A DNA stretch of 64,000 nucleotides from Paraphysomonas bandaiensis (lineage: Eukaryota; Protista; Chrysophyceae). The notes under the pieces are model-generated. The model ran no database searches. It was given only the letters and a program-made list of their open reading frames with translations, and was not told the origin of the DNA. The DNA lies in assembly GCA_965644295.1 (NCBI GenBank), contig CBFFRP010000433.1, forward strand, positions 62,001 to 126,000, given 5' to 3'. Position 1 is the first letter of the stretch, and each line of letters starts with the position of its first letter. Positions 43,319 to 64,000 of the stretch are shown here, piece after piece. The translations under genes and the position numbers were made by a program.

Positions 43319-44088
43319 GTAAATATCATTTGTGTAGAATAAACAGACATCCGGGATATTGGGCTGTCTGCTTAAGTCAAGCATCCGGGATGAGTTCACC
43401 TTAAAGACTCAAAACTCCTGAAGCCAGCAGACGTCATGGACATCGACATTCTGCTTGCTCTCTGCGTTTGCTTTGAGTGATTAATGCCGACTATAAGTTA
43501 ACATTACTGGCATCTGTGAGTGGCCAATGGCAAAAATGTGAATAGACCTGTTATGTCTTCCCACATGTCTACTGCCTAGTCTTGGTTTATCCTGATCCAC
43601 CAGGTTATTGAGATATTATGAAGGCTCTGGTACTGTTCTCCAAGCAATGTCAGGTATATTTATGGTGTTTTTATGCTATTATTGCATATAGTAGGTTTTC
43701 ATTGAGCGGAGGTGCATGTCAGGACCTCCTCTACTCTTCAGACTACCAGACACCACCTTGAAGGCCCTAAAGATCTGCTGCGTATATACAGGAGACTTAT
43801 ATATTATATGTCGAAAAGACACGGACCGCAATATTTTAGTGTTAGAACAAGTAGATTGGGCAGGAGCGTATGATCCAGCCTGAACACGCAACTCGTTGTA
43901 TGCACATCCATGTAGGTAACTATCGTAAAGGTATAGTTGTATAGTTGAGCAGATACATGCAATATAGTAACTAGATGAGAGTCATGTTTGTTAGTAGGTT
44001 GGTAACGCACAAAACTACACACTTCTTAAAAACCAGATACTCAATATCTATAGGTCAAGACTATATAGATTGTACAAAGCCACAAGGA

Positions 44089-47000
44089 GTAGTGAATGTC
44101 TGATTATTTAGCAATAGGCGTTGAGACCTTGCAGCAATTAGTGGCTAGAAGAATGCTAGTCATACTAGTTAGACCACTACCCGTAACTAATCAATACAAA
44201 CTCTTTTATCCTACTATTTAACGCTACGAAAGCTGCTTGTGCGTCGCCGCAAGCACCAAGGTGCAACCACTTCCGTTCTTTTGTGTGATATGAAATTCGC
44301 CTTTATCGTGTGTCCGTGGACTCACCGGCGCTATTGATCTGGGGGTCTCCCTTTGGGATGGGTCTCCATTGGTGTTGGAGGGGGCTCAGCGTTCTGGATT
44401 AGGGTCCTGAGTGCACCTAGTTCCAGATGTGTGGGTTGAGAGTGGTGGGGATTGTTGGGAGGAGGAGTTGGGTTTGTAGTCTGTGTTACTGTGCTCCTGT
44501 GGGGCCGCGGGTGTAGATAGAGTTGTCGAAGCCGTCGGCGTTGTGGAGGTCTGGGCAGTCCAGTGCTCTGTCGGGTAGGACCTGTGAGGTGTGCACGTGT
44601 GTCTGGAGTCGGGGACGCTGTGGGGGGTCTTCGTTGGACCCCTAGTAGTCGAAGTACTCTCGGACGTTGTCTTGACTGACTGCGTTTCGGACGGGGTCTC
44701 GGGAGTAGCCTGGGCGGCCTTTTGGACATGGTGATATAGCGACAACCGCGATCCTGTAGCATAAGCTTCGCTGCAGTGTAAAGCGGTTGCAGGAGATTAA
44801 TAACCGCTGTTTCTAGGTTCCGTAGACTGTGTGCCGTCAGGTGGTTGTGTATGGCATCTTCGAAGACCGTTTCCAGTTGGGCTGCTGTGATGGTTCCAGT
44901 CCAGTATCTCTCGACCTGTGGGATGGAGGGATTCCAGGCTCTGCTGGAGAGTCTCCGTAGTGCAGATGTGATCCAGTTGGGTAAGGTCTGAGTTCTCTGT
45001 ATTTCGTGGAGCACATTTTTATGCGATTGAAATGCAGTTTCCCTTATTTGGGTGATGGATTCATGTGTGCAGTCGAGGCACATATGTTTTAGGGAATCTA
45101 GTCGAAACCCGCAGTCAGAGCATGCGGCTTTGGTCAGGTCAAGCCCCTGTTTGGTTTTGGCCCGGTTCCTCCCTATGCAGAAAGATTTGTCCCATGTCAG
45201 TGCCGTGTTGAGTATTCTTTGGCGTAGATTTGAGCTGAGTTTGTCTTTGGATGCACTGCCATCCGCTTGAGCTAGTTTGCGCGGGAGGTGTACTCCGCTA
45301 TTGGTCCAGTAGCCAGGCGCTCGATCAGGATTGTGTCCGTAGCGTTGATCTCTGGTTGAAGTGTAGTTCTCAAGTGTCCTTAGGTCGCAGAGATCCTGGA
45401 AATTAGTAAGGAGTGGGCTAGAGTAGTATGGCCGTCTTGTACTGTGCATACGCCAGTGCCATAATCCAGCAGTTAGTAAGCGTTCGATGGCACTGTCAAT
45501 CGCAATTGTGCAGACAGTGTAGTTATTTTTTCCAAGGATGCGATCGACTTCATGCCAGTCTTCACCCGCAACTGCGTCCGCAATATAGATGCCCTTGTCC
45601 TCAAACGTCCACTCCGTTTCATCTGTGGTACGTCGTTCGGGATGAGACCTCACCCAGGTCACCTGTCGTTTGCAATCTCTGCTGGCTGCGATGCTTTCGA
45701 GTAGTACCCCTTTTGCACGGTGACCGAGAGCTCTGCGTCTTGTGGAGAGTGCTTCCTCAGTGCGGGTGCACACTGCCTGACAGTCTGTGTGGCTTCTTAT
45801 GTGTTCGGGAATACGTGTTGAGAGTATAAGCCCCATGGCTGTGCCTATGAGTTCATATGCGTATGAGTCCAAACCGGGCACGTCACGAAAGGGTGTATCT
45901 AGTCGTAGTATTGTGGTTGTACCATCTTCCCAGGCATTTTCTGGGGGTAAGTAGACGACCGCTGCACCTCCTCGGTGTGTCCATCGGGTTCGCGGATTGA
46001 CATGAGTGAGGCGACGAGTGGAGAGCGCACTGGCTGTGTATGATCCATCTGTGAAGATAGCCTTGAAAGTATCTGGTTGGACACTATTAAGGCCGAGTTC
46101 TTGTTTTAGGTTGGTCAGCATGTGTTCATCCTGTGGTTCGGGGGGCTCAGGTTCCTGAAGGGTAAGGCCCAATTCCGTTCCCCATTCCCTGAGGCTGAGA
46201 ACATAGTGGTGGTATTGGGGCTGTGGCTCTGTTGTCTGAGTGAGTAGAAAATGTGCTGCTTGACCTGCTTCTCCTCCGAGGGTTATTGCGCGCTGTAGAG
46301 ATCCCCATTTTTGCTCCTGCGCTGAGTCTGAGAAACGTTTCATACCTAATCCGTTGTGCTTGAGTGAGAGGTAGATCAGTTCCGTGGGGTATCCAGGGCC
46401 TAGACTGAGGGCCTTTCTGTAGAGGGTTGCGCAAGCAGCGTCAATTTCTCTGTACCAGTGTAGCGGCCATGAGGCTTTGGTGGCTCTATAGAGCAAAGTC
46501 GGTATGATTTGGGTCTCGATAACCATGACTATACAGCCGGCTGAGGCCTGTTTGATCCCTAGGTGTGTGGTCACGACTTTCAGGTATTTTAGACACCAGT
46601 CATGGGAGGCCTTGTCTGTGATTGTGAGAGGAAGGTCTGCTCCGAGGTAATGTATCGACTCTAGTGATGTTTGGATAGGGACTGGGTGTGGGCGCCATGA
46701 CCAGTCGTAGAGAATGATGTAGCCAATGGGGTCGGAGGCCTTGTTGGAATCCTGTAGGATCGGAAACACTGTGCAAACTACTTTGGGGATAGAGAGTTCC
46801 ATTCCCGAAAGTACGCAGAACGCAGATATTTGTTGGGCAATGAGTTGGGCAGCGTGTATGGATTTAGCTATTGTGTTAAGATCATCCGCGAAGGAGATCT
46901 TTATTTCGCCTGTAGTCGGAGTCGTGAGTTGAATAGTTGGTAACGTTGGACTCGTTGTTGACAGTTCAATGTCCAGCCACGTGAGAAGGATGTCGTAGAG

Positions 47001-50000
47001 TGCCACCCAGGCGCATGTGGATTCTGTGCCCCCTTGGGTGATACCCCTTTCGGCTTCGAAACCCAGACTGAATAGTGCAATGAAGTGGCCGTCTGCGGAC
47101 AGGAGGTCAAGGAGAGAACGTGGCTCTATGTTGTTTGCCATGAATGGTGTCCAGGGAAATGTTAGACCTCCGGCATCTAAGTTGCCAAACCAGTCAACTA
47201 CATCGTCCGGAACGCCCAGTCGTGCCCACGCGAGACGCATGAGGTTAGGCGCAATTGAGTCGAAGGCCTTCTTGAAGTCCCAGAGTGTACATATATGCTG
47301 GTCGCCTTTTCGTCTTGCTTCTTCTGCAGCCGCGAGTACCCGTAGTATCGCTGTGTCCGTCCCGTTCCTCCAGCGATAACCATGCTGGGACGGATGCAAA
47401 ACTTTCTGTTCCTCCCATACGGTAAGAATTCTATGAGTGATTATCCTTGTTAATATTTTCCTACTGACTTCAAGCAGACCAATCGGTCGGAGATTAGTGA
47501 GGGAGGATTCTCCTGGTTTCTTGAGAATGGGAGACATTACCCTGTCTCTCCACCAAATGGGCACATGTTTATGTTTCCAGAGAGATCTGGTGAGGATGTA
47601 AGCCTCTCGCTGAACTACCGGTGGCCAGGATTTGACCATGTTGGAGGAGACCATTGAGGGTCCAGGCGCGCGGTTGAAGGAGAGAGAGTGAAGTGTGCAA
47701 TAGAATTCATCCTGGGTGATGTCTTTTGCAAGAGTAGATTTGAGTGTGGCTGCCATGGCCGGAGTGGTCTTGGTACAAAGGGCCCGTCGTAACCCCAGTT
47801 GCAGGGGAAGAGGAATTTTCGAGCGGGGGTGGAGTGGTTCCTGGCATGTCGCTGAGCCCGGATCAAGAAGTGATTTCCACCATGTAGGGTCATCCTGGAG
47901 CTGTTGTGCTACAGGGTCAAGTCCAGGAGGTTTGGCATGATGCTCACGGAAGTGCGCATTAATGCCTTCATGAATGTCTTGCGGCGTTGTGAGGATGTGT
48001 CCGTCCGTTGTTTTCACCGTGGTAAGTCGGAGTAGTGTTTTGACCTTGAGACCAATTTTCTGAAGAATTGCTTGAAGTCTTTTCTGCTGTAGCAGTGCCT
48101 CCATCTGCTTGGTGCGAGCCGTGAGTCTAGTCCGCATTTCTGTCCTGGCTCTTCCATGAAGAAGTCCTCTCAGTCGCAAGGCAATTCGGAGAAGGTTTTT
48201 CTTGGTGGCTTGCTTTGCGTTCCAACCCAGGATTACTCGTGGGTCCGCGTTGCGGTGGCTGCACCAGAAGTTGATGTCCGATATGCCTTTGATGTGACCC
48301 TGAGAACTCCTGAGATAGGAGTCCCATCGGGCGAACCATGCAGTGATGATTTCGTGGGTGGGGGTGGTTGCCGGGGGGCCGCGCCATCCATGCCGTTTGT
48401 ATCCAGCAGAATTGAACATCTTTTGGATAATCCGCAAAACCATGAGCATTCCTTCCTGTATTACTCTCATTTCCGGGGAAAAGCCATTCTTGAACTTTGA
48501 GCGTGTGCGCTGACAACGTTCGTGTAGGCGTGTGCTATGTGTACATGCAGGACGCTTCGCCTCAAGCGAAGCCTGGAGGGTTATGTGATGGATGGCCGCT
48601 AGTCTGTTGGCTGCCACCTCAGGAGGGAGTATGGCAGTCGATCCGTTGTCTAAATGTGGTAGTTGTGCATGAAGTTGGAGGAGTCTTGCGGTGTATGCCT
48701 GTACTTCCTTGGAGTCCTTCGGGTTTACATTGAGACGGGGGGGGATTCGGAGGTGCGACTCCGGTGGTCGAGGGTCAAGATTGACTGGTACGGTGAAACC
48801 GACCCAGACCGGTCGATGATCGAAGGCTGCTGCGAGTAATGAGGAGGAGTCAAGGCAGCCAGTGTCCGTAACAGACATGTTCGGAGGTAACGGCGTGTGT
48901 AGAATATGATCGATCCGCGATATTCCTTTGTCTAATCTGTGGAAGGTATGATATGTTTTCCTGGGTAGGAGAAGCTCATGGAGTGGTGCAGCCAGTTGGA
49001 GTTTGTCGGCAAGTGGTCGTATGTCTCTGCCTTTAGGATTTGTCTCCATGGAGCCATTGAAGTCGCCGGCGACAATGACAGTATGGTCCTTGGCTCTGGC
49101 TTTAGTGACCCATTTCGTAAGGATGTTGCATAGGAGCTTGTAGGGGTCAGCAGTACAGATACCACGGGACGCTCTCCCTAGCTTGGTCAATTTGCTCCAT
49201 AATGTGCAAGTGCCTGGCGTGGATGGCTTCGGGGGTAGATAGACGCTTATTAGTACTAGGGTGTGCGCCACCGACGTTTTGAACTCTAGTCGGCTCACTA
49301 AACCAAGTCCCGTAAAGTCAGCCTTTGTGAAGGCGAGACGGCGCTTCCAGTATTCGCTGATTATGACTACTGTACCCCCCATTAGTGGGTCTCTTGAAGT
49401 CAGTTTTGGCTGCTTGCTGAGGAAGAGGCATATTCTTGTTCCCTGGAGTGCATCTTCGATGATACGCGTGAAGAAGTTGGCCTGAGTTTCTGTTAGACGG
49501 ACATCCTGTAATAGGAGCACGTCCAATTTTTGCCGCTTAAAGTGTCGGATGATAGCTTGGGCTTTACCTGTGTGTGATGCCGGATTGCCATTTGTGTTCC
49601 ATGTGGAGAGTCGGAGTCCCATGGCTGCTCCCGAGGGATCCTTGGGGATGCTGCTGGAGGTCTCTGTAGGAGTTCCACTCTTGTCTGCAAGGAGTCTGTC
49701 CCATACTGCTATATTGGCACCGCCTATGTCGCTGTCGTACGCAGCCCTGGCTTGGATTAATATCCCAAGTGGCCAGCGTTGATCACACCAATAATGATGT
49801 CCGTAGTTGATGAGAAGTTCTTCATCCTTAGCAATGGAACGTATTGTACGGACATAGAGGCGTTTATTTTTCGTGACAAACTTGACATTAGCCATGTTTG
49901 TGGCTAGGGGGTCATTAATATACCCAGCTTCGCATGTTACACATTGTCGGACTTGGTCAAAGCCATCTATTGCGAAGGTACCAGTACTGTCTTGAACTAT

Positions 50001-52788
50001 GTAATCAGAACGCCTTGTAGACTGACTCATCTTTGTTAGTGGATAGCGTTTGCCTTTGTACTCAGCAATGATGACGTCTGCTGGGAATGTGTTCTTCGCA
50101 TAAAGGGATAGTCCTTTGGCAGTGTTATCGGCGTACGCAATGTAGAACTTTCTTGACCAGTCCCTGTCCCAGCCGGTGGTATCTAGTGCTGGAGTTGGTC
50201 TGATCGTTCGTGTGGTCGTGGTTGGGTGTGAGTTGTGAAGGTTCGTTGGTTGGTCACTTTCATCATAATTTACGACCTTTTTGGCTTTCCGGGTTGGCTG
50301 GCATCGACTTGTCAACGCAGTTTGGGCGTGTTTCAACTGCATCTTCTTGTGCGATGGTAGTGCTCCAGGGGTTGAAGCCTGCAGAATCTGTCGATTTGTT
50401 CGTGCTAACTTGGTGCTGCTTGACGAGGTTGTTCTGGTGCTGGTCATCTTTGATGTCCTATTGTTGTTCGTGATTGAGTCCGCGGGAAGTGTAGGTGGAG
50501 CGATGGGGTCAGCCGTTGAGAGTATACTGGTGGCCAAGGTGTTTTCAAGAGATAGTAGGGCGTTGTCTAGGGCAGTAGAAAGACCGGCAGGGTCTAAGAG
50601 GAAGTAGTGAGCATCTTGTAGTATGACATGGTAGTAGTTATCACGAATAGCGTCCCTAAGTTCGTCCACCTTCCATGCGATGTTATAAGCTACTTTGTCA
50701 GTAGGGATGCCTACAATGCTGAGGTAATTACCATTTTGCGCCCACGTCGTGCAGGGGTTGATAGTAGAGGCTAAAAGGTGGACCTCTCGCACTGAGAGCC
50801 AGTGAGTTATGTCGTCTTCCGTAGTGTATGTTGTTTTGGTAGGTATTAAAAGTGCGGCCTGTGCGTGATCTAACTTATGTCGTAGTGGCTGAAGTGTGTG
50901 ATGGGCCATGCACTCCCGTTGCATTATGTCGAACGCTTGGGTGCCTAATGTATTTATGAAAGATGCTAGCGTGTGACGGTCCTTGCGTTGTTTGAGGTCT
51001 AATTTCAGACAGGAGCGAGTGTGTCGCCTGCTTGAAGCAAGAATGTGCAGATGATAGAGTGTGCTGTATGCGCAGTACCCATCACTAGGGATATGTTGTT
51101 GTGTGCGAAGGGCTGAGGGTCTGAGGGTGAGGCGGTAGACTCTGCTCATGTCGCACATATGGAGCCTGAGTTGTCGACGGTCCGTGGGGTTCATCTGTCG
51201 TAGTTGACGTCGAGCTCTCGGTGACAAGGAGACTGCAATTACTTCCCTCTGTTCCTGTTGCTCTCTGTGCTCATGTATCATAGGTGGTACAGTTGACGGC
51301 TCAGAAGTCCAGAGGATGTTGGTGCTCTGTCTGGAGGTCTGGTGTTGTAGAAAACAGGATAGCCGCTCCTGAGTCCGTGTTAGAGCGTGCATGATGCAGG
51401 TGGGGATATTTGTTGCATTGAGTATGTGAAACCCATGCTGGCTGCGTATGATGTCATGGGTTACCACAGTGTTGGTAGAAGCGTGCACTGTTAGTGCCTG
51501 TCTGGAGAATGGTGACAGCTGTGCCCAACCAGGCGCCAGGTGCGGTTGAACAGCGTCCCATAGTCTGTATGGTATGGAGAGAAGATCGAGTAGCAGTTGG
51601 AAATCCTCCGTGTCTAGATGTAGTCCTGTGTGTGGAGTCGAGGATTCATATTGCATGAGTGTCTTACGGAGACTAACAGTGGCTGTTGAGGGAATACCCT
51701 TTGTCAGGCAAAGGGTCCGCACATGCCTAGATACAACATGAGTGGAGTCTGCCCAGGGTTTGTTGCCATTCGCGAGATGCTGGGCAACTAGTAGGGCGCT
51801 GTGCGTGGTATCCAATTTGTGCTCTGGTAGCGTGAATGATATCATGAGATCATAGTTGTCCGTCCTGGAAGCCTTGGCTATGAATCCTTCCCATATGTCT
51901 GTACAGGCAGGGGATAGCATGTGTGCATATATTTCTTTTAAAAGGTTTCCCTGTGGGGAGGCAGCAATGGTTTGGGTTTCATCATATCTAACCCAGTTGT
52001 TCAGCAGATCGGAGTGAAAGGGCGTGTGACCCCAGCCCTCTGTGTAGTGTCGGGGGTGTGTGGCAATGTCCTTGGGCAGTGCATCCGGCCTGATGTCAGG
52101 AGTGGTAGTGGAGTGTGAGGATGGGCCGTCTGGGGCTAATGCTGGAGTTCCCATGGTGTTCAGTTGAGTAGGGTTGGTGGTAGGTGGCCTCCGTTTGACT
52201 GGGAAATAGTCAAATAGAGTTGCATACGGTGTGGTGGCATCCTTAGTGGGTAAGGGTAATGTGTGGGTGGATTTGCTGGGTCCGTCACCGCTGTTATCGG
52301 AAGAGAATTCCTTCCCCTGAAGGGCGTGGGAGGGATGGTTGATGGACCTGGCACGATGGACTCCTTGCATTCCCTTGGAATGATATTGCAACACATTTTG
52401 GAGACGCATGATGACGAGGTCAGGAATTCTCTCGAGTAGCGCGTGTAGTTCCAACTCCACCGGGTATTTGGTGTCCAGGAAGAAGTGGTCGTTGGAGCAA
52501 AACACATCATAAGATGGAAGGGATTGAGTTTGTGGAAGGAAGGAGGAATGGTGGGTAGACCAGTACGCCCAGTTGTGGCCAAGGTCCACTGGTGAATCTT
52601 GCCAGATACGAATTCGTATACTCAGGGTTTCTGCCAGGAGGGCTATGATGTCTGTGTAGCCCCATTGCTCTGGGGGTATTCCGACAGCAGTTGGTCGTTT
52701 GCGGCGTAGTGCTTTGTTGTACGTTGTTAGCTGCTGTCGGAGCTTCTTCCGGATGAATGCAAAGTTCAGCATCTTGGCTTCAGCGAGC
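44089..52788 (-). mobile_element. Non-LTR retrotransposon (APE-RT-RNase H type), 5'-truncated, 8.7 kb, 12-bp TSD
   Basis: AAGCCACAAGGA occurs at 44077-44088 and 52789-52800. There is a sharp GC-content shift at the boundaries. The 242-nt 3' UTR ends ...CAGACATTCACTAC. Confidence 0.96.
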
Positions 52789-52790
52789 AA
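44331..52790 (-). CDS. Retrotransposon polyprotein (>2800 aa, N-terminus truncated): OTU-like repeats - SET - APE endonuclease - RT - RNase H - CCHC knuckle
   Basis: OTU-like IPSDGYC..W..E..LLA..DAHYF (~51110-50590). SET: KGLSLYAK..IIAEYKG..DG..GYINDP..NVKF..IAKDEELLINYG..YW (~50150-49788). APE: STWNTNG, LLLQD, SVYLPP, AGDFN, SRIDHI, FDHRPV (~49615-48790). RT: LRPIGLLE, QHGYR, DFKKAFDSI, GITQG, FADDL, YLG (~47680-46620). RNase H: FTDGS, AYELIG, HTDCQ, WVRSH, IADAVA (~46065-45560). CSDC-x8-H-x4-C (~45123-45068). Confidence 0.95.
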   Translation of the reverse strand: MLAEAKMLNFAFIRKKLRQQLTTYNKALRRKRPTAVGIPPEQWGYTDIIALLAETLSIRIRIWQDSPVDLGHNWAYWSTHHSSFLPQTQSLPSYDVFCSNDHFFLDTKYPVELELHALLERIPDLVIMRLQNVLQYHSKGMQGVHRARSINHPSHALQGKEFSSDNSGDGPSKSTHTLPLPTKDATTPYATLFDYFPVKRRPPTTNPTQLNTMGTPALAPDGPSSHSTTTPDIRPDALPKDIATHPRHYTEGWGHTPFHSDLLNNWVRYDETQTIAASPQGNLLKEIYAHMLSPACTDIWEGFIAKASRTDNYDLMISFTLPEHKLDTTHSALLVAQHLANGNKPWADSTHVVSRHVRTLCLTKGIPSTATVSLRKTLMQYESSTPHTGLHLDTEDFQLLLDLLSIPYRLWDAVQPHLAPGWAQLSPFSRQALTVHASTNTVVTHDIIRSQHGFHILNATNIPTCIMHALTRTQERLSCFLQHQTSRQSTNILWTSEPSTVPPMIHEHREQQEQREVIAVSLSPRARRQLRQMNPTDRRQLRLHMCDMSRVYRLTLRPSALRTQQHIPSDGYCAYSTLYHLHILASSRRHTRSCLKLDLKQRKDRHTLASFINTLGTQAFDIMQRECMAHHTLQPLRHKLDHAQAALLIPTKTTYTTEDDITHWLSVREVHLLASTINPCTTWAQNGNYLSIVGIPTDKVAYNIAWKVDELRDAIRDNYYHVILQDAHYFLLDPAGLSTALDNALLSLENTLATSILSTADPIAPPTLPADSITNNNRTSKMTSTRTTSSSSTKLARTNRQILQASTPGALPSHKKMQLKHAQTALTSRCQPTRKAKKVVNYDESDQPTNLHNSHPTTTTRTIRPTPALDTTGWDRDWSRKFYIAYADNTAKGLSLYAKNTFPADVIIAEYKGKRYPLTKMSQSTRRSDYIVQDSTGTFAIDGFDQVRQCVTCEAGYINDPLATNMANVKFVTKNKRLYVRTIRSIAKDEELLINYGHHYWCDQRWPLGILIQARAAYDSDIGGANIAVWDRLLADKSGTPTETSSSIPKDPSGAAMGLRLSTWNTNGNPASHTGKAQAIIRHFKRQKLDVLLLQDVRLTETQANFFTRIIEDALQGTRICLFLSKQPKLTSRDPLMGGTVVIISEYWKRRLAFTKADFTGLGLVSRLEFKTSVAHTLVLISVYLPPKPSTPGTCTLWSKLTKLGRASRGICTADPYKLLCNILTKWVTKARAKDHTVIVAGDFNGSMETNPKGRDIRPLADKLQLAAPLHELLLPRKTYHTFHRLDKGISRIDHILHTPLPPNMSVTDTGCLDSSSLLAAAFDHRPVWVGFTVPVNLDPRPPESHLRIPPRLNVNPKDSKEVQAYTARLLQLHAQLPHLDNGSTAILPPEVAANRLAAIHHITLQASLEAKRPACTHSTRLHERCQRTRSKFKNGFSPEMRVIQEGMLMVLRIIQKMFNSAGYKRHGWRGPPATTPTHEIITAWFARWDSYLRSSQGHIKGISDINFWCSHRNADPRVILGWNAKQATKKNLLRIALRLRGLLHGRARTEMRTRLTARTKQMEALLQQKRLQAILQKIGLKVKTLLRLTTVKTTDGHILTTPQDIHEGINAHFREHHAKPPGLDPVAQQLQDDPTWWKSLLDPGSATCQEPLHPRSKIPLPLQLGLRRALCTKTTPAMAATLKSTLAKDITQDEFYCTLHSLSFNRAPGPSMVSSNMVKSWPPVVQREAYILTRSLWKHKHVPIWWRDRVMSPILKKPGESSLTNLRPIGLLEVSRKILTRIITHRILTVWEEQKVLHPSQHGYRWRNGTDTAILRVLAAAEEARRKGDQHICTLWDFKKAFDSIAPNLMRLAWARLGVPDDVVDWFGNLDAGGLTFPWTPFMANNIEPRSLLDLLSADGHFIALFSLGFEAERGITQGGTESTCAWVALYDILLTWLDIELSTTSPTLPTIQLTTPTTGEIKISFADDLNTIAKSIHAAQLIAQQISAFCVLSGMELSIPKVVCTVFPILQDSNKASDPIGYIILYDWSWRPHPVPIQTSLESIHYLGADLPLTITDKASHDWCLKYLKVVTTHLGIKQASAGCIVMVIETQIIPTLLYRATKASWPLHWYREIDAACATLYRKALSLGPGYPTELIYLSLKHNGLGMKRFSDSAQEQKWGSLQRAITLGGEAGQAAHFLLTQTTEPQPQYHHYVLSLREWGTELGLTLQEPEPPEPQDEHMLTNLKQELGLNSVQPDTFKAIFTDGSYTASALSTRRLTHVNPRTRWTHRGGAAVVYLPPENAWEDGTTTILRLDTPFRDVPGLDSYAYELIGTAMGLILSTRIPEHIRSHTDCQAVCTRTEEALSTRRRALGHRAKGVLLESIAASRDCKRQVTWVRSHPERRTTDETEWTFEDKGIYIADAVAGEDWHEVDRILGKNNYTVCTIAIDSAIERLLTAGLWHWRMHSTRRPYYSSPLLTNFQDLCDLRTLENYTSTRDQRYGHNPDRAPGYWTNSGVHLPRKLAQADGSASKDKLSSNLRQRILNTALTWDKSFCIGRNRAKTKQGLDLTKAACSDCGFRLDSLKHMCLDCTHESITQIRETAFQSHKNVLHEIQRTQTLPNWITSALRRLSSRAWNPSIPQVERYWTGTITAAQLETVFEDAIHNHLTAHSLRNLETAVINLLQPLYTAAKLMLQDRGCRYITMSKRPPRLLPRPRPKRSQSRQRPRVLRLLGVQRRPPTASPTPDTRAHLTGPTRQSTGLPRPPQRRRLRQLYLHPRPHRSTVTQTTNPTPPPNNPHHSQPTHLELGALRTLIQNAEPPPTPMETHPKGRPPDQ

Positions 52791-53135
52791 GCCACAAGGA
52801 TATTAAACCAAGACAATAAGTCGAGGTAATACCAAAACCTGGTGAAATGTATGAAATCTAGTGAAATTTTTGATGATGGTTGGAAAAGGGTATAACTATG
52901 AATAATAAATATATATCAGCCCCCAAGCAATATCTAATAATATGAATTATTTCTTTGCATGTATGAATTTGACAACTACTATTCAATTCTCTGAAAGACG
53001 ATGCCTCACAGCTGACACGGTGAAGTTTCCATATATCACATATTCCTTTTCTCTATCTGGAGGAAGAGAGGGTACTGCCATGTAGATATGATACTATTAC
53101 GATACCGCAATAGTTATGGAGTTGCTGACACTTAC

Positions 53136-53491: not shown

Positions 53492-56400
53492 TCACTTAGT
53501 CTTTCCGTGTCTTCCCTTCGCCTTCCCTGTCTTTTTAGAAGACACGGAAGATTTACGTGTCTTCGTCAACCCCTTCCTGCTGCCTTTCTTTTTGTATGTC
53601 TTCGTCTTTTTCGAAGAAGAACGGGTTGAAATTTTTTTAGATTGTGAGTCCGATTTCTTATTATTTAAGGAAGGGTTAGAAAGTTTGGATTGTCGATGTT
53701 TTTTCTTCCTTTTATCAGACATTGAGGCCTTTGATGCTGTTGGATACAGCGTGGGCAGAGAACCAGGCAACGGTGATGTCGGAAAAACAGTGGGGGAGTA
53801 CGAAGGAACAGAAGAAAAAACAGTCGAGGGGGCTGTGCTCGGCAAATTTAGAGCGGGAATCGTCGGCCGTAAACTTGGAGAAACATTCGGCTGGAGAATT
53901 GGCCCAGGGCGATGTGATCTTTTCTTTCTAAAATCTTTTCTACGTTTCCAAGCCTTTCCTTTCTTCTTTCGAGGTCTTGAAGTTCGATAACGTTTCTTTC
54001 TTGTTGACGCCAAAGTAGGTTGTGATACAGCAGCACTTGGGTTCAAACTTGGAAATTGACTCGGAATATCTAAAAACGGAAGTGTAGGGCGAAATGTAGA
54101 AGGTACCAATGACGACGGTGAAAGTGTCGGAACTGTTGAGGGTATTGAAGTGGGTAGCGATGTCGGGATTGAGGTTGGAAGAGATGTCGGGATTACAGTG
54201 GGTAGAGATGTGGGTAGAGATGTCGGGAATGACGTTGGTACGGACGTAGGATTCGATGTTGGAATGGAAGTAGGATTCGATGTCGGAGGGCTAGTAGGTA
54301 TCGAAGTGGGTAGCGATGTGGGGATTACGGTGGGAAGAGATGTGGGTAGAGAAGTTGGTATCGATGTGGGTAGCGATGTTGGAATTGATGTCGGTACGGT
54401 GGTAGGATTCGATGTCGGGAATGAGGTGGGAAGAGATGTGGGTAGAGAAGTTGGTATCGATGTGGGTACAGATGTCGGAAATGAAGTAGGAAAAGATGTC
54501 GGTAAGCTGGTTGGCACCGATGTAGGTAGAGATGTCGGGATAGAGGTGGGAGGAGACGTAGGGAGACTGGTAGGTATTGAAGTGGGTAGCGATGTCGGAA
54601 TTGAGGTTGGAAGAGATGTCGGGATTACAGTGGGAAGAGTTGTGGGTAGAGATGTCGGGATTGACGTTGGTACGGACGAAGGATTCGATGTTGGAATGGA
54701 AGTAGGATTCGATGTCGGAGTGCTAGTAGGTATTGAGGTGGGTATCGTTGTCGAAATTGATGTGGGAAGAGATGTCGGGAATGAGGTAGGCAGAGATGTG
54801 GGTAGAGATGTCGGGATTGACGTTGGTACGGACGTAGGATTCGATGTCGGAGGGCTAGTAGGTATCGAAGTGGGTAGCGATGTGGGCATTACGGTGGGAA
54901 GAGATGTGGGTAGAGAAGTTGGTATCGATGTGGGTACAGATGTCGGAAATGAAGTGGGAAGAGATGTCGGTAAGCTGGTTGGCACCGATGTAGGTAGAGA
55001 TGTCGGGATAGAGGTGGGAGGAGATGTAGGGAGACTGGTAGGTATTGAAGTGGGTAGCGATGTCGGAATTGAGGTTGGAAGAGATGTCGGGATTACAGTG
55101 GGTAGAGATGTGGGAAAAGATGTCGGGATTACAGTGGGTAGAGACGTGGGAAGAGATGTGGGAAGCGATATCGGGATTACAGTGGGTAGAGATGTGGGTA
55201 GAGATGTCGGAAATGACGTTGGTACGGACGTAGGATTCGATGTTGGAATGGAAGTAGGATTCGATGTCGGAGGGCTAGTAGGTATCGAAGTGGGTAGAGG
55301 TGTGGGGATTACGGTGGGAAGAGATGTGGGTAGAGAAGTTGGTATCGATGTGGGAAGCGATGTTGGAAATGAAGTGGGTAGAGATGTCGGTAAGCTGGTT
55401 GGTACCGATGTAGGTAGAGATTTCGGGATAGAGGTGGGAGGAGACGTAGGAAGACTGGTAGGTATTGAAGTGGGTAGCGATGTCGGAATTGAGGTTGGAA
55501 GAGATGTCGGGATTACAGTAGGTAGAGATGTGGGTAGAGATGTCGGGAATGACGTTGGTACGGACGTAGGATTCGATGTCGGAGGGCTAGTAGGTATCGA
55601 AGTGGGTAGCGATGTGGGGATTACGGTGGGAAGAGATGTGGGTAGAGAAGTTGGTATCGATGTTGGAATTGATGTCGGTACGGTGGTAGGATTCAATGTC
55701 GGGAATGAGGTGGGAAGAGATGTGGGTAGAGAAGTTGGTATCGATGTGGGTACAGATGTCGGAAATGAAGTGGGAAGAGATGTCGGTAAGCTGGTTGGTA
55801 CCGATGTAGGTAGAGATGTCGGGATAGAGGTGGGAGGAGATGTAGGGAGACTGGTAGGTATTGAAGTGGGTAGCGATGTCGGGATTGATGTGGGAAGAGA
55901 TGTCGGGATTACAGTGGGTAGAGATGTGGGTAGAGATGTCGGGATTGACGTTGGTACGGACGTAGGATTCGATGTTGGAATGGAAGTAGGATTCGATGTC
56001 GGAGGGCTAGTAGGTATCGAAGTGGGTAGCGATGTGGGGATTACGGTGGGAAGAGATGTGGGTAGAGAAGTTGGTATCAATGTGGGAAGCGATGTTGGAA
56101 TTGATGTCGGTACGGTGGTAGGATTCGATGTCGGGAATGAGGTGGGAAGAGATGTGGGTAGAGAAGTTGGTATCGATGTGGGTACAGATGTCGGAAATGA
56201 AGTGGGAAGAGATATCGGTAAGCTGGTTGGTACCGATGTAGGTAGAGATGTCGGGATAGAGGTGGGAGGAGATGTAGGGAGACTGGTAGGTATTGAAGTG
56301 GGTAGCGATGTCGGAATTGAGGTTGGAAGAGATGTCGGGATTACAGTGGGTAGAGATGTGGGTAGAGATGTCGGGATTGACGTTGGTACGGACGTAGGAT

Positions 56401-59400
56401 TCGATGTTGGAATGGAAGTAGGATTCGATGTCGGAGAGCTAGTAGGTATCGAAGTGGGTAGCGATGTGGGGATTACGGTGGGAAGAGATGTGGGTAGAGA
56501 AGTTGGTATCGATGTGGGAAGCGATGTTGGAATTGATGTCGGTACGGTGGTAGGGTTCGATGTCGGGAATGAGGTGGGAAGAGATGTGGGTAGAGAAGTT
56601 GGTATCGATGAGGGTACAGATGTCGGAAATGAAGTGGGAAGAGATGTCGGTAAGCTGGTTGGTACCGATGTAGGTAGAGATGTCGGGATAGAGGTGGGAG
56701 GAGACGTAGGGAGACTGGTAGGTCTTGAAGTGGGTAGCGATGTCGGAATTGAGGTTGGAAGAGATGTCGGGATTACAGTAGGTAGAGATGTGGGAAGAGA
56801 TGACGGGATTACAGTGGGTAGAGATGTCGGGATTGACGTCAGTACGGACGTAGGATTCGATGTCGGGAATGAGGTGGGAAGAGATGTGGGTAGAGAAGTT
56901 GGTATCGATGTGGGTACAGATGTCGGAAATGAAGTGGGAAGAGATGTCGGTAAGCTGGTTGGTACCGATGTAGGTAGAGATGTCGGGATAGAGGTGGGAG
57001 GAGATGTAGGGAGACTGGTAGGTATTGAAGTGGGTAGCGATGTCGGAATTGAGGTTGGAAGAGATGTCGGGATTACAGTGGGTAGAGATGTCGGGATTGA
57101 CGTCGGTACGGACGTAGGATTCGATGTTGGAATGGAAGTAGGATTCGATGTCGGAGGGCTAGTAGGTATCGAAGTGGGTAGCGATGTGGGGATTACGGTG
57201 GGAAGAGATGTGGGTAGAGAAGTTGGTATCGATGTGGGAAGCGATGTTGGAATTGATGTCGGTACGGTGGTAGGATTCGATGTCGGGAATGAGGTGGGAA
57301 GAGATGTGGGTAGAGAAGTTGGTATCGATGTGGGTACAGATGTCGGAAATGAAGTGGGAAGAGATGTCGGTAAGCTGGTTGGCACCGATGTAGGTAGAGA
57401 TGTCGGGATAGAGGTGGGAGGAGACGTAGGGAGACTGGTAGGTCTTGAAGTGGGTAGCGATGTCGGAATTGAGGTTGGAAGAGATGTCGGGATTACAGTG
57501 GGTAGAGATGTCGGGATTGACGTCGGTACGGACGTAGGATTCGATGTCGGGAATGAGGTGGGAAGAGATGTGGGTAGAGAAGTTGGTATCGATGTGGGTA
57601 CAGATGTCGGAAATGAAGTGGGAAGAGATGTCGGTAAGCTGGTTGGTACCGATGTAGGTAGAGATGTCGGGATAGAGGTGGGAGGAGATGTAGGGAGACT
57701 GGTAGGTATTGAAGTGGGTAGCGATGTCGGGATTGATGTGGGAAGAGATGTCGGGATTACAGTGGGTAGAGATGTGGGTAGAGATGTCGGGATTGACGTT
57801 GGTACGGACGTAGGATTCGATGTTGGAATGGAAGTAGGATTCGATGTCGGAGGGCTAGTAGGTATCGAAGTGGGTAGCGATGTGGGGATTACGGTGGGAA
57901 GAGATGTGGGTAGAGAAGTTGGTATCGATGTGGGAAGCGATGTTGGAATTGATGTCGGTACGGTGGTAGGATTCGATGTCGGGAATGAGGTGGGAAGAGA
58001 TGTGGGTAGAGAAGTTGGTATCGATGTGGGTACAGATGTCGGAAATGAAGTGGGAAGAGATGTCGGTAAGCTGGTTGGTACCGATGTAGGTAGAGATGTC
58101 GGGATAGAGGTGGGAGGAGATGTAGGGAGACTGGTAGGTATTGAAGTGGGTAGCGATGTCGGGATTGATGTGGGAAGAGATGTCGGGATTACAGTGGGTA
58201 GAGATGTGGGTAGAGATGTCGGGATTGACGTTGGTACGGACGTAGGATTCGATGTTGGAATGGAAGTAGGATTCGATGTCGGAGGGCTAGTAGGTATCGA
58301 AGTGGGTAGCGATGTGGGGATTACGGTGGGAAGAGATGTGGGTAGAGAAGTTGGTATCGATGTGGGAAGCGATGTTGGAATTGATGTCGGTACGGTGGTA
58401 GGATTCGATGTCGGGAATGAGGTGGGAAGAGATGTGGGTAGAGAAGTTGGTATCGATGTGGGTACAGATGTCGGAAATGAAGTGGGAAGAGATGTCGGTA
58501 AGCTGGTTGGCACCGATGTAGGTAGAGATGTCGGGATAGAGGTGGGAGGAGACGTAGGGAGACTGGTAGGTCTTGAAGTGGGTAGCGATGTCGGAATTGA
58601 GGTTGGAAGAGATGTCGGGATTACAGTGGGTAGAGATGTCGGGATTGACGTCGGTACGGACGTAGGATTCGATGTCGGGAATGAGGTGGGAAGAGATGTG
58701 GGTAGAGAAGTTGGTATCGATGTGGGTACAGATGTCGGAAATGAAGTGGGAAGAGATGTCGGTAAGCTGGTTGGTACCGATGTAGGTAGAGATGTCGGGA
58801 TAGAGGTTGGAGGAGACGTAGGGAGACTGGTAGGTATTGAAGTGGGTAGCGATGTCGGGATTACAGTAGGTAGAGATGTGGGAAGAGATGTCGGGATTGA
58901 CGTCGGTACAGACGTAGGATTCGATGTCGGGAATGAGGTGGGAAGAGATGTGGGTAGAGAAGTAGGTATCGATGTGGGAAGCGATGTTGGAATTAATGTC
59001 GGTACAGACGTAGGATTCGATGTCGGGAATGAGGTGGGAAGAGATGTGGGTAGAGAAGTTGGTATCGATGTGGGTACAGATGTCGGAAATGAAGTGGGAA
59101 GAGATGTCGGTAAGCTGGTTGGTACCGATGTAGGTAGAGATGTCGGGATAGAGGTTGGAGGAGATGTAGGGAGACTGGTAGGTATTGAAGTGGGTAGCGA
59201 TGTCGGAATTGAGGTTGGAAGAGATGTCGGGATTACAGTAGGTAGAGATGTGGGAAGAGATGTCGGGATTGACGTCGGTACAGACGTAGGATTCGATGTC
59301 GGGAATGAGGTGGGAAGAGATGTGGGTAGAGAAGTTGGTATCGATGTGGGTACAGATGTCGGAAATGAAGTGGGAAGAGATGTCGGTAAGCTGGTTGGTA

Positions 59401-62400
59401 CCGATGTAGGTAGAGATGTCGGGATAGAGGTGGGAGGAGATGTAGGGAGACTGGTAGGTATTGAAGTGGGTAGCGATGTCGGGATTGATGTGGGAAGAGA
59501 TGTCGGGATTACGGTGGGTAGAGATGTGGGTAGAGATGTCGGGATTGACGTCGGTACAGACGTAGGATTCGATGTCGGGAATGAGGTGGGAAGAGATGTG
59601 GGTAGAGAAGTTGGTATCGATGTGGGTACAGATGTCGGAAATGAAGTGGGAAGAGATGTCGGTAAACTGGTTGGTACCGATGTAGGTAGAGATGTCGGGA
59701 TAGAGGTGGGAGGAGATGTAGGGAGACTGGTAGGTATTGAAGTGGGTAGCGATGTCGGAATTGAGGTTGGAAGAGATGTCGGGATTACAGTAGGTAGAGA
59801 TGTGGGAAGAGATGTCGGGATTGACGTCGGTAAATATGTCGGGATTGACGTCGGTACAGACGTAGGATTCGATGTCGGGAATGAGGTGGGAAGAGATGTG
59901 GGTAGAGAAGTTGGTATCGATGTGGGTACAGATGTCGGAAATGAAGTGGGAAGAGATGTCGGTAAACTGGTTGGTACCGATGTAGGTAGAGATGTCGGGA
60001 TAGAGGTTGGAGGAGATGTAGGGAGACTGGTAGGTATTGAAGTGGGTAGCGATGTCGGAATTGAGGTTGGAAGAGATGTCGGGATTACAGTAGGTAGAGA
60101 TGTGGGAAGAGATGTCGGGATTGACGTCGGTAAAGATGTCGGGATTGACGTCGGTACAGACGTAGGATTCGATGTCGGGAATGAGGTGGGAAGAGATGTG
60201 GGTAGAGAAGTTGGTATCGATGTGGGTACAGATGTCGGAAATGAAGTGGGAAGAGATGTCGGTAAGCTGGTTGGTACCGATGTAGGTAGAGATGTCGGGA
60301 TAGAGGTTGGAGGAGATGTAGGGAGACTGGTAGGTATTGAAGTGGGTAGCGATGTCGGGATTGATGTGGGAAGAGATGTCGGGATTACAGTGGGTAGAGA
60401 TGTGGGTAGAGATGTCGGGATTGACGTTGGTACGGACGTAGGATTCGATGTTGGAATGGAAGTAGGATTCGATGTCGGAGGGCTAGTAGGTATCAAAGTG
60501 GGTAGCGATGTGGGGATTACGGTGGGAAGAGATGTGGGTAGAGAAGTTGGTATCGATGTGGGAAGCGATGTTGGAATTGATGTCGGTACGGTGGTAGGAT
60601 TCGATGTCGGGAATGAGGTGGGAAGAGATGTGGGTAGAGAAGTTGGTATCGATGTGGGTACAGATGTCGGAAATGAAGTGGGAAGAGATGTCGGTAAGCT
60701 GGTTGGCACCGATGTAGGTAGAGATGTCGGGATAGAGGTTGGAGGAGATGTAGGGAGACTGGTAGGTATTGAAGTAGGTAGCGATGTCGGAATTGAGGTT
60801 GGAAAAGAAGTCGGGATTACAGTAGGTAGAGACGTGGGAAGAGATGTGGGAAGAGATGTCGGGATTACAGTGGGTAGAGATGTGGGTAGAGATGTCGGGA
60901 TTGACGTTGGTACGGACGTAGGATTCGATGTTGGAATGGAAGTAGGATTCGATGTCGGAGGGCTAGTAGGTATCGAAGTGGGTAGCGATGTCGGGATTAC
61001 GGTGGGAAGAGATGTGGGTAGAGAAGTTGGTATCGATGTTGGAATTGATGTCGGTACGGTGGTAGGATTCAATGTCGGGAATGAGGTGGGAAGAGATGTG
61101 GGTAGAGATGTCGGGATTGACGTTGGTACGGACGTTGGATTCGATGTTGGAATGGAAGTAGGATTCGATGTCGGAGGGCTAGTAGGTATCGAAGTGGGTA
61201 GCGATGTGGGGATTACGGTGGGAAGAGATGTGGGTAGAGAAGTTGGTATCGATGTTGGAATAGATGTCGGTACGGTGGTAGGATTCAATGTCGGGAATGA
61301 GGTGGGTAGAGAAGTTGGTATCGATGTGGGAAGCGATGTCGGTACGGTGGTAGGATTCGATGTCGGGAATGAGGTGGGAAGAGATGTGGGTACAGATGTC
61401 GGAAATGAAGTGGGAAGAGATGTCGGTAAGCTGGTTGGCACCGATGTAGGTAGGGATGTCGGGATAGAGGTGGGAGGAGATGTAGGGAGACTGGTAGGTA
61501 TTGAAGTGGGTAGCGATGTCGGAATTGAGGTTGGAAGAGATGTCGGGATTACAGTGGGTAGAGATGTCGGGATTGACGTCGGTACGGACGTAGGATTCGA
61601 TGTCGGAGGGCTAGTAGGTATCGAAGTGGGTAGCGATGTGGGGATTACGGTGGAATGAGATGTGGGTAGATATGTTGGAAATGAAGTGGAAAGAGATGTC
61701 GGGAATGAGGTGGGAGGCGATGCAGGGAGACTGGTAGGTATCGATGAGGGTTGTAATGTTTTGATTGACGTTGGTGCGGAGGTAGGATTTGATGTTGGAA
61801 TGGAGGATGGTGAGGATGTAGGAGTGTATGTTGGGAGTAAAGTTGGCACCCTTGTTGGAACTTCAAGTAATGGCACTGGTGGTCTCGAGGTAGGAAGGAG
61901 AGTACTCTCAGGTCTAGATGGCTTCGGAGTTCGTTGTTTTTTCTTCTTAGTTGGACTTGGCGTATTTACATTGCTTGGTGTTAGAGTTGGAGTTGAAATA
62001 GGTAGAAGGGTCGGAACTTCAAGGGCAGGTACAGAAGGGCAAGGAGTTGAAGTTGGTTTGTATGTGCGATGCTGCATTGGTGGTTGCTTTTTCCGAGGGG
62101 GTAGCCTCTTCTTCCTTGGCGGAGATCTCCTCTTCCTTGGTGGAGATCTCTTCTTTCTTGGTGGAAACCTCTTCTTCCTTGGTGGAAGCCTCTTCTTCCT
62201 ATGAGCCGGTAAACGTTTCTTTTTTCGTTCCAGCACATGCAAAGTTCTGAGATCCCCACTGTCAGTATCATCCCTCCCCAAAGTGACAATTCGACTAGGA
62301 TGTTTGGTATAATCTGAAGACAATATCAGATCTGGATTGTCATTATGAATGGAGTGCATGAGATGATGTGACTTGGTTTTTCTTACTGCGAGATCGGCTC

Positions 62401-62443
62401 CTACTAAACAGCCCAAAATTACAAAGACCTTGAAACCTATCAT
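53492..62443 (-). CDS. Giant secreted mucin-like PT-repeat protein (about 2983 aa) with Lys/Arg-rich termini
   Basis: ATG at 62443 gives the signal-peptide-like [19 protein letters not shown], followed by RKKRxPP heptads, about 7.6 kb of PT[S/V/T][L/I/F/N/V/P] tetrapeptides and an S/K/R-rich C-terminus. No introns or stops. Confidence 0.88.
54140..61810. repeat. Coding 12-bp-unit tandem array with higher-order repeats
   Basis: Units such as GATGTGGGTAGA and GATGTCGGGATT. Identical 60-nt lines at 59581, 59881 and 60181 give a 300-bp period; a 432-bp offset is seen between 57721 and 58153. Confidence 0.97.
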
Positions 62444-64000
62444 GGTCACTATGATATTTAACAACAAAAACAGATGAAACAGACTTTTAAAACATATACA
62501 ATTATGAAACCTGATATCACAATGATATTTACTATGGATATAATATATATTATAATGTATCATCGAACAAATCAAAAGAGTATTTGACTTATTCAATGAT
62601 GCCCTGATAGCTCTTGTATATTGTTATGAGTTACAATACCCCTTATATCCATTGATACATCTTGATAGCTTTAACAATATCCATAAGCTTAACAGCTAAA
62701 CATATATATGATCCCTATCAGTCCTCTCTATTATTAACTTACAAATATATGAGATATATAGATAAGGTTTGTTAAGGTACACTACATACATTATGATACA
62801 TCTACTATACCGTATCGGCAGTCAGCATCTTATTTTTTCGGTAATAAAATGAAGCAAATATACTCTATATAACTGCAGTATATATATGGCTGTAATACAC
62901 ATAATTGTTATCTCAATATTAGAGGCATCTTTGAAGGATGCCGATACGACTGCTGTGCTGATTTGCTGATATATGAGCCAAAAATCTTGGAATTTTGACC
63001 AATTCTATAGGAATTGGGATTTTGAGTGTATTTATCTAAATTTACATCCGGCAACGTACTGGAATTTGGACATTTTTTTCGGGGTTTTGGCATTGATAAA
63101 TAGCCTATTTTTATGTGATTTCAAAAGTTGTCAGTACAAGGTGTTGATCTTAACACTCTGCCAATGGATGCACGTAGATATCAACCGTCTGGAATATGTA
63201 AATGTATAAATTGGAATGCGAGCTATGTTGTAACGAGATCATTTCACGTGAATTGTTCGTTGTTCGATATTGGATGTTTACACATGGGTACACTCTGGTT
63301 TTGGAATGTGATACTACTACAGACGATACGGAGCTTTGACCTGAACACAATAGCCTGCTCTCTACACTTTCTAATCAACTTTTCCTGCTGAAATTTGGAA
63401 TGACGTTTTAGAAATGAAGTGCTGCTGTGACATACTCGAGCTCTTCTGTGCAACACAGAGTAAATATCGGATGACCGCAGATAATGGAGCACGGGACTCT
63501 CCCAACAGTCGTAAGGATTGTAACACAAGTAATTAAGCATTTTGAATAGTTTATTTGTAGTGATAGGAAGTTCCGGAGTGGAGCTGGCTTGCACTCTTGC
63601 TTTTTTACTATTTTATTTAAGATCATCGCAACATATTGCGTGAAGTTTATAACGTTGTTACTTCGTAATATTATATTGTATCTTAATCTTACAGTAGTTA
63701 CAGTCTTAAAAAGGGATAGAGTTTAGTATTTAATTAGAAGAGACCCTTAGATGTACGATGTAGTATATCATTATCATTGTTACTTCGGTGGGAAACTAAA
63801 TTTCAGTGTGCACAAGAAATCTTATCCCACTCACTCAGGAGAGAAAGGCGTTGAATCGATTGGTGTCGTAGAAGTTACACATCTATTAAGTGTAATTTAT
63901 TATTTCTCTCCTGTTAAGCTGGCGGTGATTGGATTGTGTTATCGCTCGAAACTGGCGAGAGATACAGTAATGATGACGAAAGTAATCTATTTAAAAATAA

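Follow-up and report, generated by a model that had tools for sequence, protein, structure and literature searches.

A SET domain within the polyprotein of a LINE retrotransposon of Paraphysomonas bandaiensis, a candidate lysine methyltransferase of minimal PR/SET7-9/SET8-like type

Retrotransposons are usually seen as passive targets of silencing by histone methylation. Mobile elements that carry SET genes of their own have been described among DNA transposons. The proto-Helentron of Phytophthora carries SET and OTU open reading frames (ORFs) (PMC4067079), HarbingerS and MuDR elements of Phytophthora carry SET genes (cited in PMC12730594), and PAG2 of the Plavaka elements of the red alga Bostrychia is a SET gene (bioRxiv 10.1101/2025.02.11.637652). 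In this literature, transposon SET genes are interpreted as a means to counteract epigenetic silencing (PMC4067079; PMC12730594; bioRxiv 10.1101/2025.02.11.637652). Here we describe a SET domain encoded within the polyprotein of a non-LTR (long terminal repeat) retrotransposon, a long interspersed nuclear element (LINE) designated family A, in a stretch of 64,000 nucleotides (the window) from the protist Paraphysomonas bandaiensis (contig CBFFRP010000433.1, positions 62,001 to 126,000). In our judgement there is an even chance that this domain is a functional SET lysine methyltransferase of minimal PR/SET7-9/SET8-like type which acts on a chromatin protein.

The LINE resembles the Helentron, HarbingerS, MuDR and Plavaka elements in being a mobile element with its own SET, and OTU-like proteases co-occur with SET in Helentrons. 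In these DNA transposons, however, the SET is a separate accessory ORF, whereas in the LINE it is an in-frame domain of a retrotransposon polyprotein. The Helentron SET has been described as Clr4-like, in contrast to the LINE SET, which is of a PR-like subfamily with an N-D-P motif. The LINE SET is not a member of the transposon accessory-gene families, though it may work like them. Additional polyprotein domains to which a part in targeting or in evading host control is ascribed are known from Ty3/gypsy elements, namely the integrase chromodomain of chromoviruses and the ALKBH domain of orchid elements (PMC2864245, PMC9289625). As with the LINE SET, each is an extra domain of chromatin or epigenetic type fixed in a retroelement polyprotein, but the chromodomain is a reader and ALKBH an RNA demethylase, whereas the LINE SET has a lysine-methyltransferase fold. 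A full-text literature search turned up no description of a SET within the polyprotein of a LINE or LTR element, although most subscription journals and Repbase Reports lie outside its coverage and absence from it is not proof. If our reading is correct, some retroelements bring their own chromatin writer to new insertion sites. This would extend the known transposon-borne epigenetic enzymes from DNA transposons to retrotransposons, and would allow one to test directly if a mobile element is able to determine the epigenetic state of the sites at which it inserts, or to select these sites.

A sequence-only reading of the window had proposed a SET domain at 49788-50150, without Cys-rich pre- or post-SET regions and about 55 amino acids (aa) from the start of an APE endonuclease. 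The coordinates (aa 881-1001) were right, and the open frame at this position lies on the minus strand, the plus strand being full of stops. Pfam assigned SET (PF00856) to aa 893-997 (34.8 bits, E 2.4e-8; gathering cut-off 22.4), and the structure model described below has a predicted local distance difference test score (pLDDT) of 90. The domain is thereby confirmed, and the confident fold, its matches to solved SET domains and the 93 genomic matches described below exceed what chance would give. No Cys cluster was found in the flanks of the SET, and the spacing from the YW dipeptide at its end to the APE domain was measured as ~57-62 aa. For PF00856, 44-55 bits are reached by the gypsy copies and by the sister families of LINEs. 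The domain resembles the PR domains of PRDM proteins, with a score below the Pfam threshold for PR/SET in this copy (PF21549, 20.8 bits, cut-off 27); LINE family C of the same genome reaches 40.8 bits.

The motifs that had been quoted (KGLS, EYKG, GYINDP, the Tyr of ELxxxYG, and YW) are all present in the minus-strand ORF, as KGLSLYA (aa 892-898), EYKG (910-913), GYINDPL (957-963) and EELLINYGHHYW (990-1001). Numbering starts at the TTG at 52790, the first ATG being at 52772. The key residues are G893, S895, Y911, G913, Y930, N959-D960-P961, N968, E991, Y996 and G997. S895 stands at the second Gly of the GxG motif, Y996 takes the position of the catalytic Tyr, and Y1000-W1001 lie just downstream of the core. 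In the alignment with KMT2D, G-L-S falls on G-L-G and Y-I-N-D on Y-I-N-H, while the Tyr of NYG, part of an EELLINYG motif, falls on the motif Tyr of KMT2D and likewise on that of PRDM9. The residues that align with positions known to serve catalysis or contact with S-adenosylmethionine (SAM) are retained: in GxG this is the first Gly, in NH(S/C) the Asn, and in both EY-G and EL...YG the Tyr.

An AF2 model (mfa28a1b96baf) built with 68 relatives reached a pLDDT of 90.1 and a predicted template modelling score of 0.84; an earlier model from 6 sequences only had a pLDDT of 58.7 and was not used. Foldseek matched the model to SET and PR domains only, with a probability of 1.0 (PRDM3, LegAS4, SET8, PRDM1, MLL3, SET7/9 and G9a). 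In VIA-align the SET matches had Z scores of 13-14.3. The best was SET7/9 (Z 14.3 over 145 residues, model residues 10-163 on SET7/9 204-366), with SET8 at Z 14.2 (root-mean-square deviation 2.6 over 126 residues, the match running through SET8 residue 352). On the basis of the model the domain has the SET fold, and a minimal type is supported, one which is devoid of Cys-rich pre- and post-SET regions and closed by a C-flanking helix. Two such helices are modelled, one over aa 1008-1018 (model residues 148-158) and the other over aa 1024-1038 (model residues 164-178). SET7/9 (SETD7) and SET8 (SETD8/KMT5A) are therefore similar to the LINE SET as top structural matches and in their lack of Cys-rich flanks, their C-flanking helix and their EL...YG motif. 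They differ from it, however, in sequence (17-22% identity), in having N-H-S where the LINE has N-D-P and Gly where it has Ser at the second position of GxG, and in being host enzymes and not polyprotein domains.

The domain had also been likened to viral vSET and to SETD8-type enzymes. The latter comparison stands, given the best structural matches, whereas a close kinship to vSET was rejected, as phmmer gave an E of 0.055 over the C-terminal 33 residues only. The Chlorella virus vSET (PBCV-1 A612L) and Legionella LegAS4 remain comparable as small SETs that a genetic parasite deploys on host chromatin, and LegAS4 is among the top fold matches to the LINE SET model (Z 13.0-13.2), but both are free viral or bacterial proteins and not domains of a polyprotein. 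A co-fold of the SET with SAM and residues 1-45 of host H3 scored 0.00, which speaks neither for nor against binding.

Word-index protein searches, with the SET within the full ORF and with the SET alone, gave no match at E<=1e-3, and an exhaustive profile search was thus needed. This returned 8321 proteins at E<=1e-3 and just 5 at E<=1e-30, with no close relatives outside this genome. Conservation was assessed in an alignment of 68 of the best matches of the profile search (alignment A2). Tyr996 is invariant (68/68), and at least 90% conservation was seen for G893, Gly at 895, Y911, G913, Y930, N959, D960 and N968, and also for I986, E991, G997, Y1000 and W1001. As at least 90% of the 68 keep N-D(-P) instead of N-H-S, the additional downstream Asn and YGxxYW, these form the signature of a distinct PR-like SET subfamily, and the altered motifs can be read from the alignment as this signature and not as decay. 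The sequence-only reading had regarded both GxG and N-H as altered. The change of Gly to Ser in GxG is indeed specific to a lineage, being, with the Ala of family C, the only deviation peculiar to the LINEs of this genome (the position is Gly in at least 90% of subfamily members), but N-D-P is not peculiar to this copy and belongs to the subfamily as a whole. Similarly, the PR domains of PRDM9 and PRDM12 have lost the His after the conserved Asn, have a conserved Asn ~8 residues later and carry EL(L/F)VxYG. PRDM9 has N-C where the LINE SET has N-D, and is named a histone-lysine methyltransferase in its PDB entries. The LINE SET differs from PRDM proteins in having no zinc-finger array and in the YW that follows YGxx. 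The result is a defined, compact N-D-P SET subfamily of ~160 aa with flanks.

Three further LINE lineages of this genome, B, C1 and C2, share the architecture of family A. The SET of family B, which has an intact ORF of 2795 aa, is 68% identical to that of A, and those of C1 and C2 are 49% identical to it. In the alignment of the polyproteins, conservation of the SET equals that of the APE domain and exceeds that of the linkers and of the N-terminal region. Nei-Gojobori counts were made between subfamilies, where synonymous divergence (dS) is saturated, and the proportions of non-synonymous (pN) and synonymous (pS) differences are therefore given in place of dN/dS. Between A and B, pS was saturated at 0.64-0.79 (0.68 in the SET), while pN was 0.181 in the SET, 0.165 in the APE, 0.169 in the reverse transcriptase (RT) and 0.27-0.40 in the linkers. 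Between C1 and C2, pS was likewise saturated at 0.66-0.77 (0.77 in the SET), and pN was 0.144 in the SET, 0.134 in the APE, 0.098 in the RT and ~0.30 in the linkers. Comparisons within families held too few changes to inform on selection. With a pN on par with the APE, close to the RT and below the saturated pS, the SET has evolved under purifying selection that matches in strength the selection on the endonuclease.

This bears on whether the SET could be a neutral passenger or relic, that is, a captured fragment of a host gene that does nothing for the element. Transduction or fusion of host sequence by LINEs does occur, and the motifs deviate from the textbook SET consensus. However, purifying selection during the divergence of the lineages speaks strongly against a neutral passenger, with pN far below the saturated pS and on par with the APE and RT across four LINE lineages. 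Moreover, almost all of the ~35 young copies described below have an open frame, and SET has been kept in three retroelement architectures, and we regard a relic as very improbable. The ORF of family C (L016:653-1066(+), contig C644) is at least 3333 aa long, in an open frame of 3731 aa, and close to its N-terminus a second, degenerate SET-like domain was observed at aa 218-355 (iE 1.4e-7, and 1e-10 on the excised segment), without GxG and N-D-P but with EEILLDYG kept.

The SET is not confined to LINEs. Weaker matches in the genome (25-31% identity), which belong to the N-D-P subfamily as well, lie in the pol of Ty3/gypsy elements, in the order RT - RNase H - SET - integrase. Further architectures were sought among the top 150 database matches by per-domain phmmer and Pfam, all of them on metagenomic contigs. 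These included fragments with SET-APE (P0004, P0010 and P0037), gypsy pols with SET between RNase H and integrase (P0017, P0070, P0019, P0032, P0147 and others) and two long LINE ORFs in which SET is C-terminal to the RT. One of these two, P0076 (L057:1454-13225, on an ENA metagenome contig), has 11 cluster members and a length of 3923 aa; its domains are RNase H - APE - RT - SET - OTU - Ulp1 (Peptidase_C48), with a 498-aa ORF ahead of it, and it represents a third way of joining SET with a retroelement. In the SET tree the four LINE SETs of this genome form one clade (100/98), the gypsy SETs of this genome and of the metagenomes form another (100/98), and the LINE-associated SETs of both architectures group weakly (80/79). 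In the gypsy-type pol P0017 (L058:1172-8725) the N-terminal part also matches Exo_endo_phos, perhaps because the call is chimeric or a LINE is nested in it.

Members of the subfamily were also found in multi-methyltransferase proteins, as SET-PRMT5-DOT1-SET, PRMT5-SET, SET-SET-DOT1 and SET-SET-kinase. The proteins in which the SET is joined to PRMT5, DOT1 or a protein kinase are P0034, P0027, P0020 and P0009, and SET-PRMT5-DOT1-SET spans 2700 aa.

These architectures bring in the nature of the substrate. The SET could be an active methyltransferase with a non-histone substrate, either the element's own polyprotein or ribonucleoprotein (RNP), or a factor with which the host replicates, repairs or silences DNA. 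Many proteins other than histones are methylated by SET7/9 and SET8. These two are the best structural matches to the LINE SET, and PDB titles among the matches include SET7/9 with TAF10, ER and DNMT1 peptides. In the metagenomic LINEs, furthermore, the SET travels with OTU and Ulp1 proteases, which act on protein modifiers, and it lies far from the endonuclease, indicating that closeness to the nick is not required. The fusions with DOT1 and PRMT5, however, point to chromatin, and the known transposon-borne SETs are all read as histone methyltransferases (PMC12730594). A non-histone substrate is thus in our judgement fairly unlikely. Taken together with the chromatin or histone substrate that we prefer, it makes an active methyltransferase of one kind or the other quite probable overall.

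The element itself was placed by its structure and its copies. It belongs to the APE-type LINEs, having APE followed by RT in one ORF, a target-site duplication and many 5'-truncated copies. Its 3' untranslated region (UTR) of ~245 nt (44088-44330(-)) ends in ...CATTCACTACT, with no poly(A) and no simple repeat. Other copies end at the same terminus, and site-specific insertion was rejected on five 3' junctions with unrelated flanks. In the 62.5 Mb of genome searched, 93 matches to the SET segment were found, ~35 of them at least 94% identical and almost all of these with an open frame. Over 2.1-3.5 kb, 11 of 12 copies compared were 97.8-99.8% identical to the element of the window and the twelfth 98.9%. 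For the 3' UTR there were 2512 first-look candidates, of which 40 were scored, each being 99-100% identical. Set against ~93 SET matches, the 2512 candidates imply that most copies are strongly 5'-truncated, the typical LINE pattern. Family A is thus a young, multi-copy LINE with an intact ORF. Between 46 and 87% of its sampled words are present in marine metagenomes and in two polyA metatranscriptome runs, and contigs of these two runs map on the element, including 49950-50221 and 50022-50218 within the SET. The family is probably expressed, and its near-identical copies, target-site duplication, intact ORF and RNA-library contigs together indicate that it is active.

How the SET might serve such an element can be envisaged as follows. 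Being tethered to the APE and RT, it would arrive at the target with the nicking and reverse-transcribing machinery of the RNP. There, with SAM as the methyl donor, it would modify a lysine in a protein of the chromatin, a histone tail being the most plausible target. The element could gain in that the chromatin state of the new copy is set and host silencing countered, or in that integration is eased or biased. A chromatin lysine as the substrate is suggested by the position of the SET beside a DNA-cutting or DNA-joining module in both retroelement classes, by the fusion of its relatives to DOT1 and PRMT5 (a histone and an arginine methyltransferase), and by the precedent of SET-bearing DNA transposons. 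Viral and bacterial SET effectors offer a further precedent.

Several observations weigh against this reading and call for caution as to activity. The canonical GxG cofactor motif is absent from the LINE SETs of this genome, in all of whose LINE lineages the second Gly is Ser (G-L-S, families A and B) or Ala (G-N-A, family C). The canonical N-H-(S/C) motif is also missing, with Asn kept and His changed to Asp. In the profile search of solved structures, the closest sequence relatives belong to the PR type (PRDM12, 4.6e-18; PRDM9, 1.2e-15), and several PR domains have weak or no activity. In subfamily C2, Cys replaces the Tyr of EY-G (SECTG; L018 and L019, contigs C426 and C32), which may be a variant of specificity or of activity. 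No target-site preference was seen in the five 3' junctions, and the RNA-library contigs do not prove transcription, because DNA carry-over is possible.

The changes in GxG and N-H, together with the kinship to PR domains, could befit a pseudo-enzyme that binds a histone tail or nucleosome and anchors the endonuclease and RT (or, in gypsy elements, the integrase) with no methyl transfer, in the manner of the chromovirus chromodomain. A tether of this kind would suit a SET that adjoins a DNA-cutting or DNA-joining module in two retroelement classes, and purifying selection is equally expected for a binding role. However, the positions relevant to catalysis are the best conserved in the 68 relatives (Tyr 100%; Asn and the Tyr of EY-G at least 90%), and the gypsy-borne copies keep a canonical GxG, as GRGLFA or GEGLFA. 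The fusion of relatives to bona fide methyltransferase domains and the lack of an insertion-site preference in the five junctions also argue against a mere anchor, which we consider unlikely. Returning to the chromatin methyltransferase, a wider proposal can be put forward tentatively, and on the whole we lean against it. Here, at least two unrelated retrotransposon classes (LINE and Ty3/gypsy) would have independently fixed the same kind of SET, in some lineages with the de-modifying proteases OTU and Ulp1, and would use it as an effector of their own that places a histone mark at, or for, the new insertion, so that host silencing is evaded or diverted. If so, such SETs would be to retroelements what vSET is to viruses and what SET effectors are to bacteria.

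Table 1. Coordinates of the family A element and its domains in the window, and location of related LTR elements in the genome
Feature	Position	Strand	Remarks
Non-LTR retrotransposon (LINE), family A, full-length	44088..52788	-	Flanking 11-12 bp direct repeat; 3' terminus common to other copies
Target-site duplication, 5' copy, (T)CCTTGTGGCTT	52789..52800	-	First T ambiguous with element end
Target-site duplication, 3' copy, (T)CCTTGTGGCTT	44077..44088	-	
Polyprotein ORF, 2819 aa, uninterrupted	44331..52790	-	N-terminal region - SET - APE - RT - C-terminal region
N-terminal region before SET	50451..52790	-	DGYC...H[YF] pattern; no Pfam match
Whole folded SET module, aa 877-1038	49677..50162	-	AF2 model: N-flank strand, core, two C-flanking helices
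SET domain core, aa 893-997	49800..50114	-	Pfam PF00856; residues mapped via KMT2D and PRDM9 alignments
APE-type endonuclease domain, aa 1063-1300	48891..49604	-	Pfam PF03372 (Exo_endo_phos), 38.6 bits
RT domain, aa 1757-2050	46641..47522	-	Pfam PF00078 (RVT_1), 55 bits
SET-bearing Ty3/gypsy LTR elements, this genome	L020:3217-8499, L021, L022, L023	- (L020)	Contigs C476, C661, C654, C339

Conservation of the N-terminal region of the polyprotein between families is low, with an identity between A and C of 15-38% over most of its length and of 47-53% around aa 661-780. An OTU identity for this region was considered and not confirmed, as there was no Pfam match at E<=1 and the Atlas features were weak (OTU at rank 8, score 0.90). 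A phmmer search of the region against PDB gave no OTU match, just a spurious match to a lectin repeat.

As to the host, the genome contains several silicon-transporter genes (PF03842), 3 SH2 matches and 0 matches to chlorophyll a/b-binding (LHC) proteins, a gene content which fits poorly with either a choanoflagellate or a typical photosynthetic diatom. The runs that contain the element are marine, and the overall picture is that of a marine, apparently non-photosynthetic, silicon-using protist.

Next to the element in the window lies an ORF of 3034 aa (53492-62596(-)), which consists nearly entirely of short repeats of PT(S/V/I/L) type with basic ends. A long antisense ORF within it (54150-61658(+)) is most likely a by-product of the repeat, the GC skew there being ~0.7.

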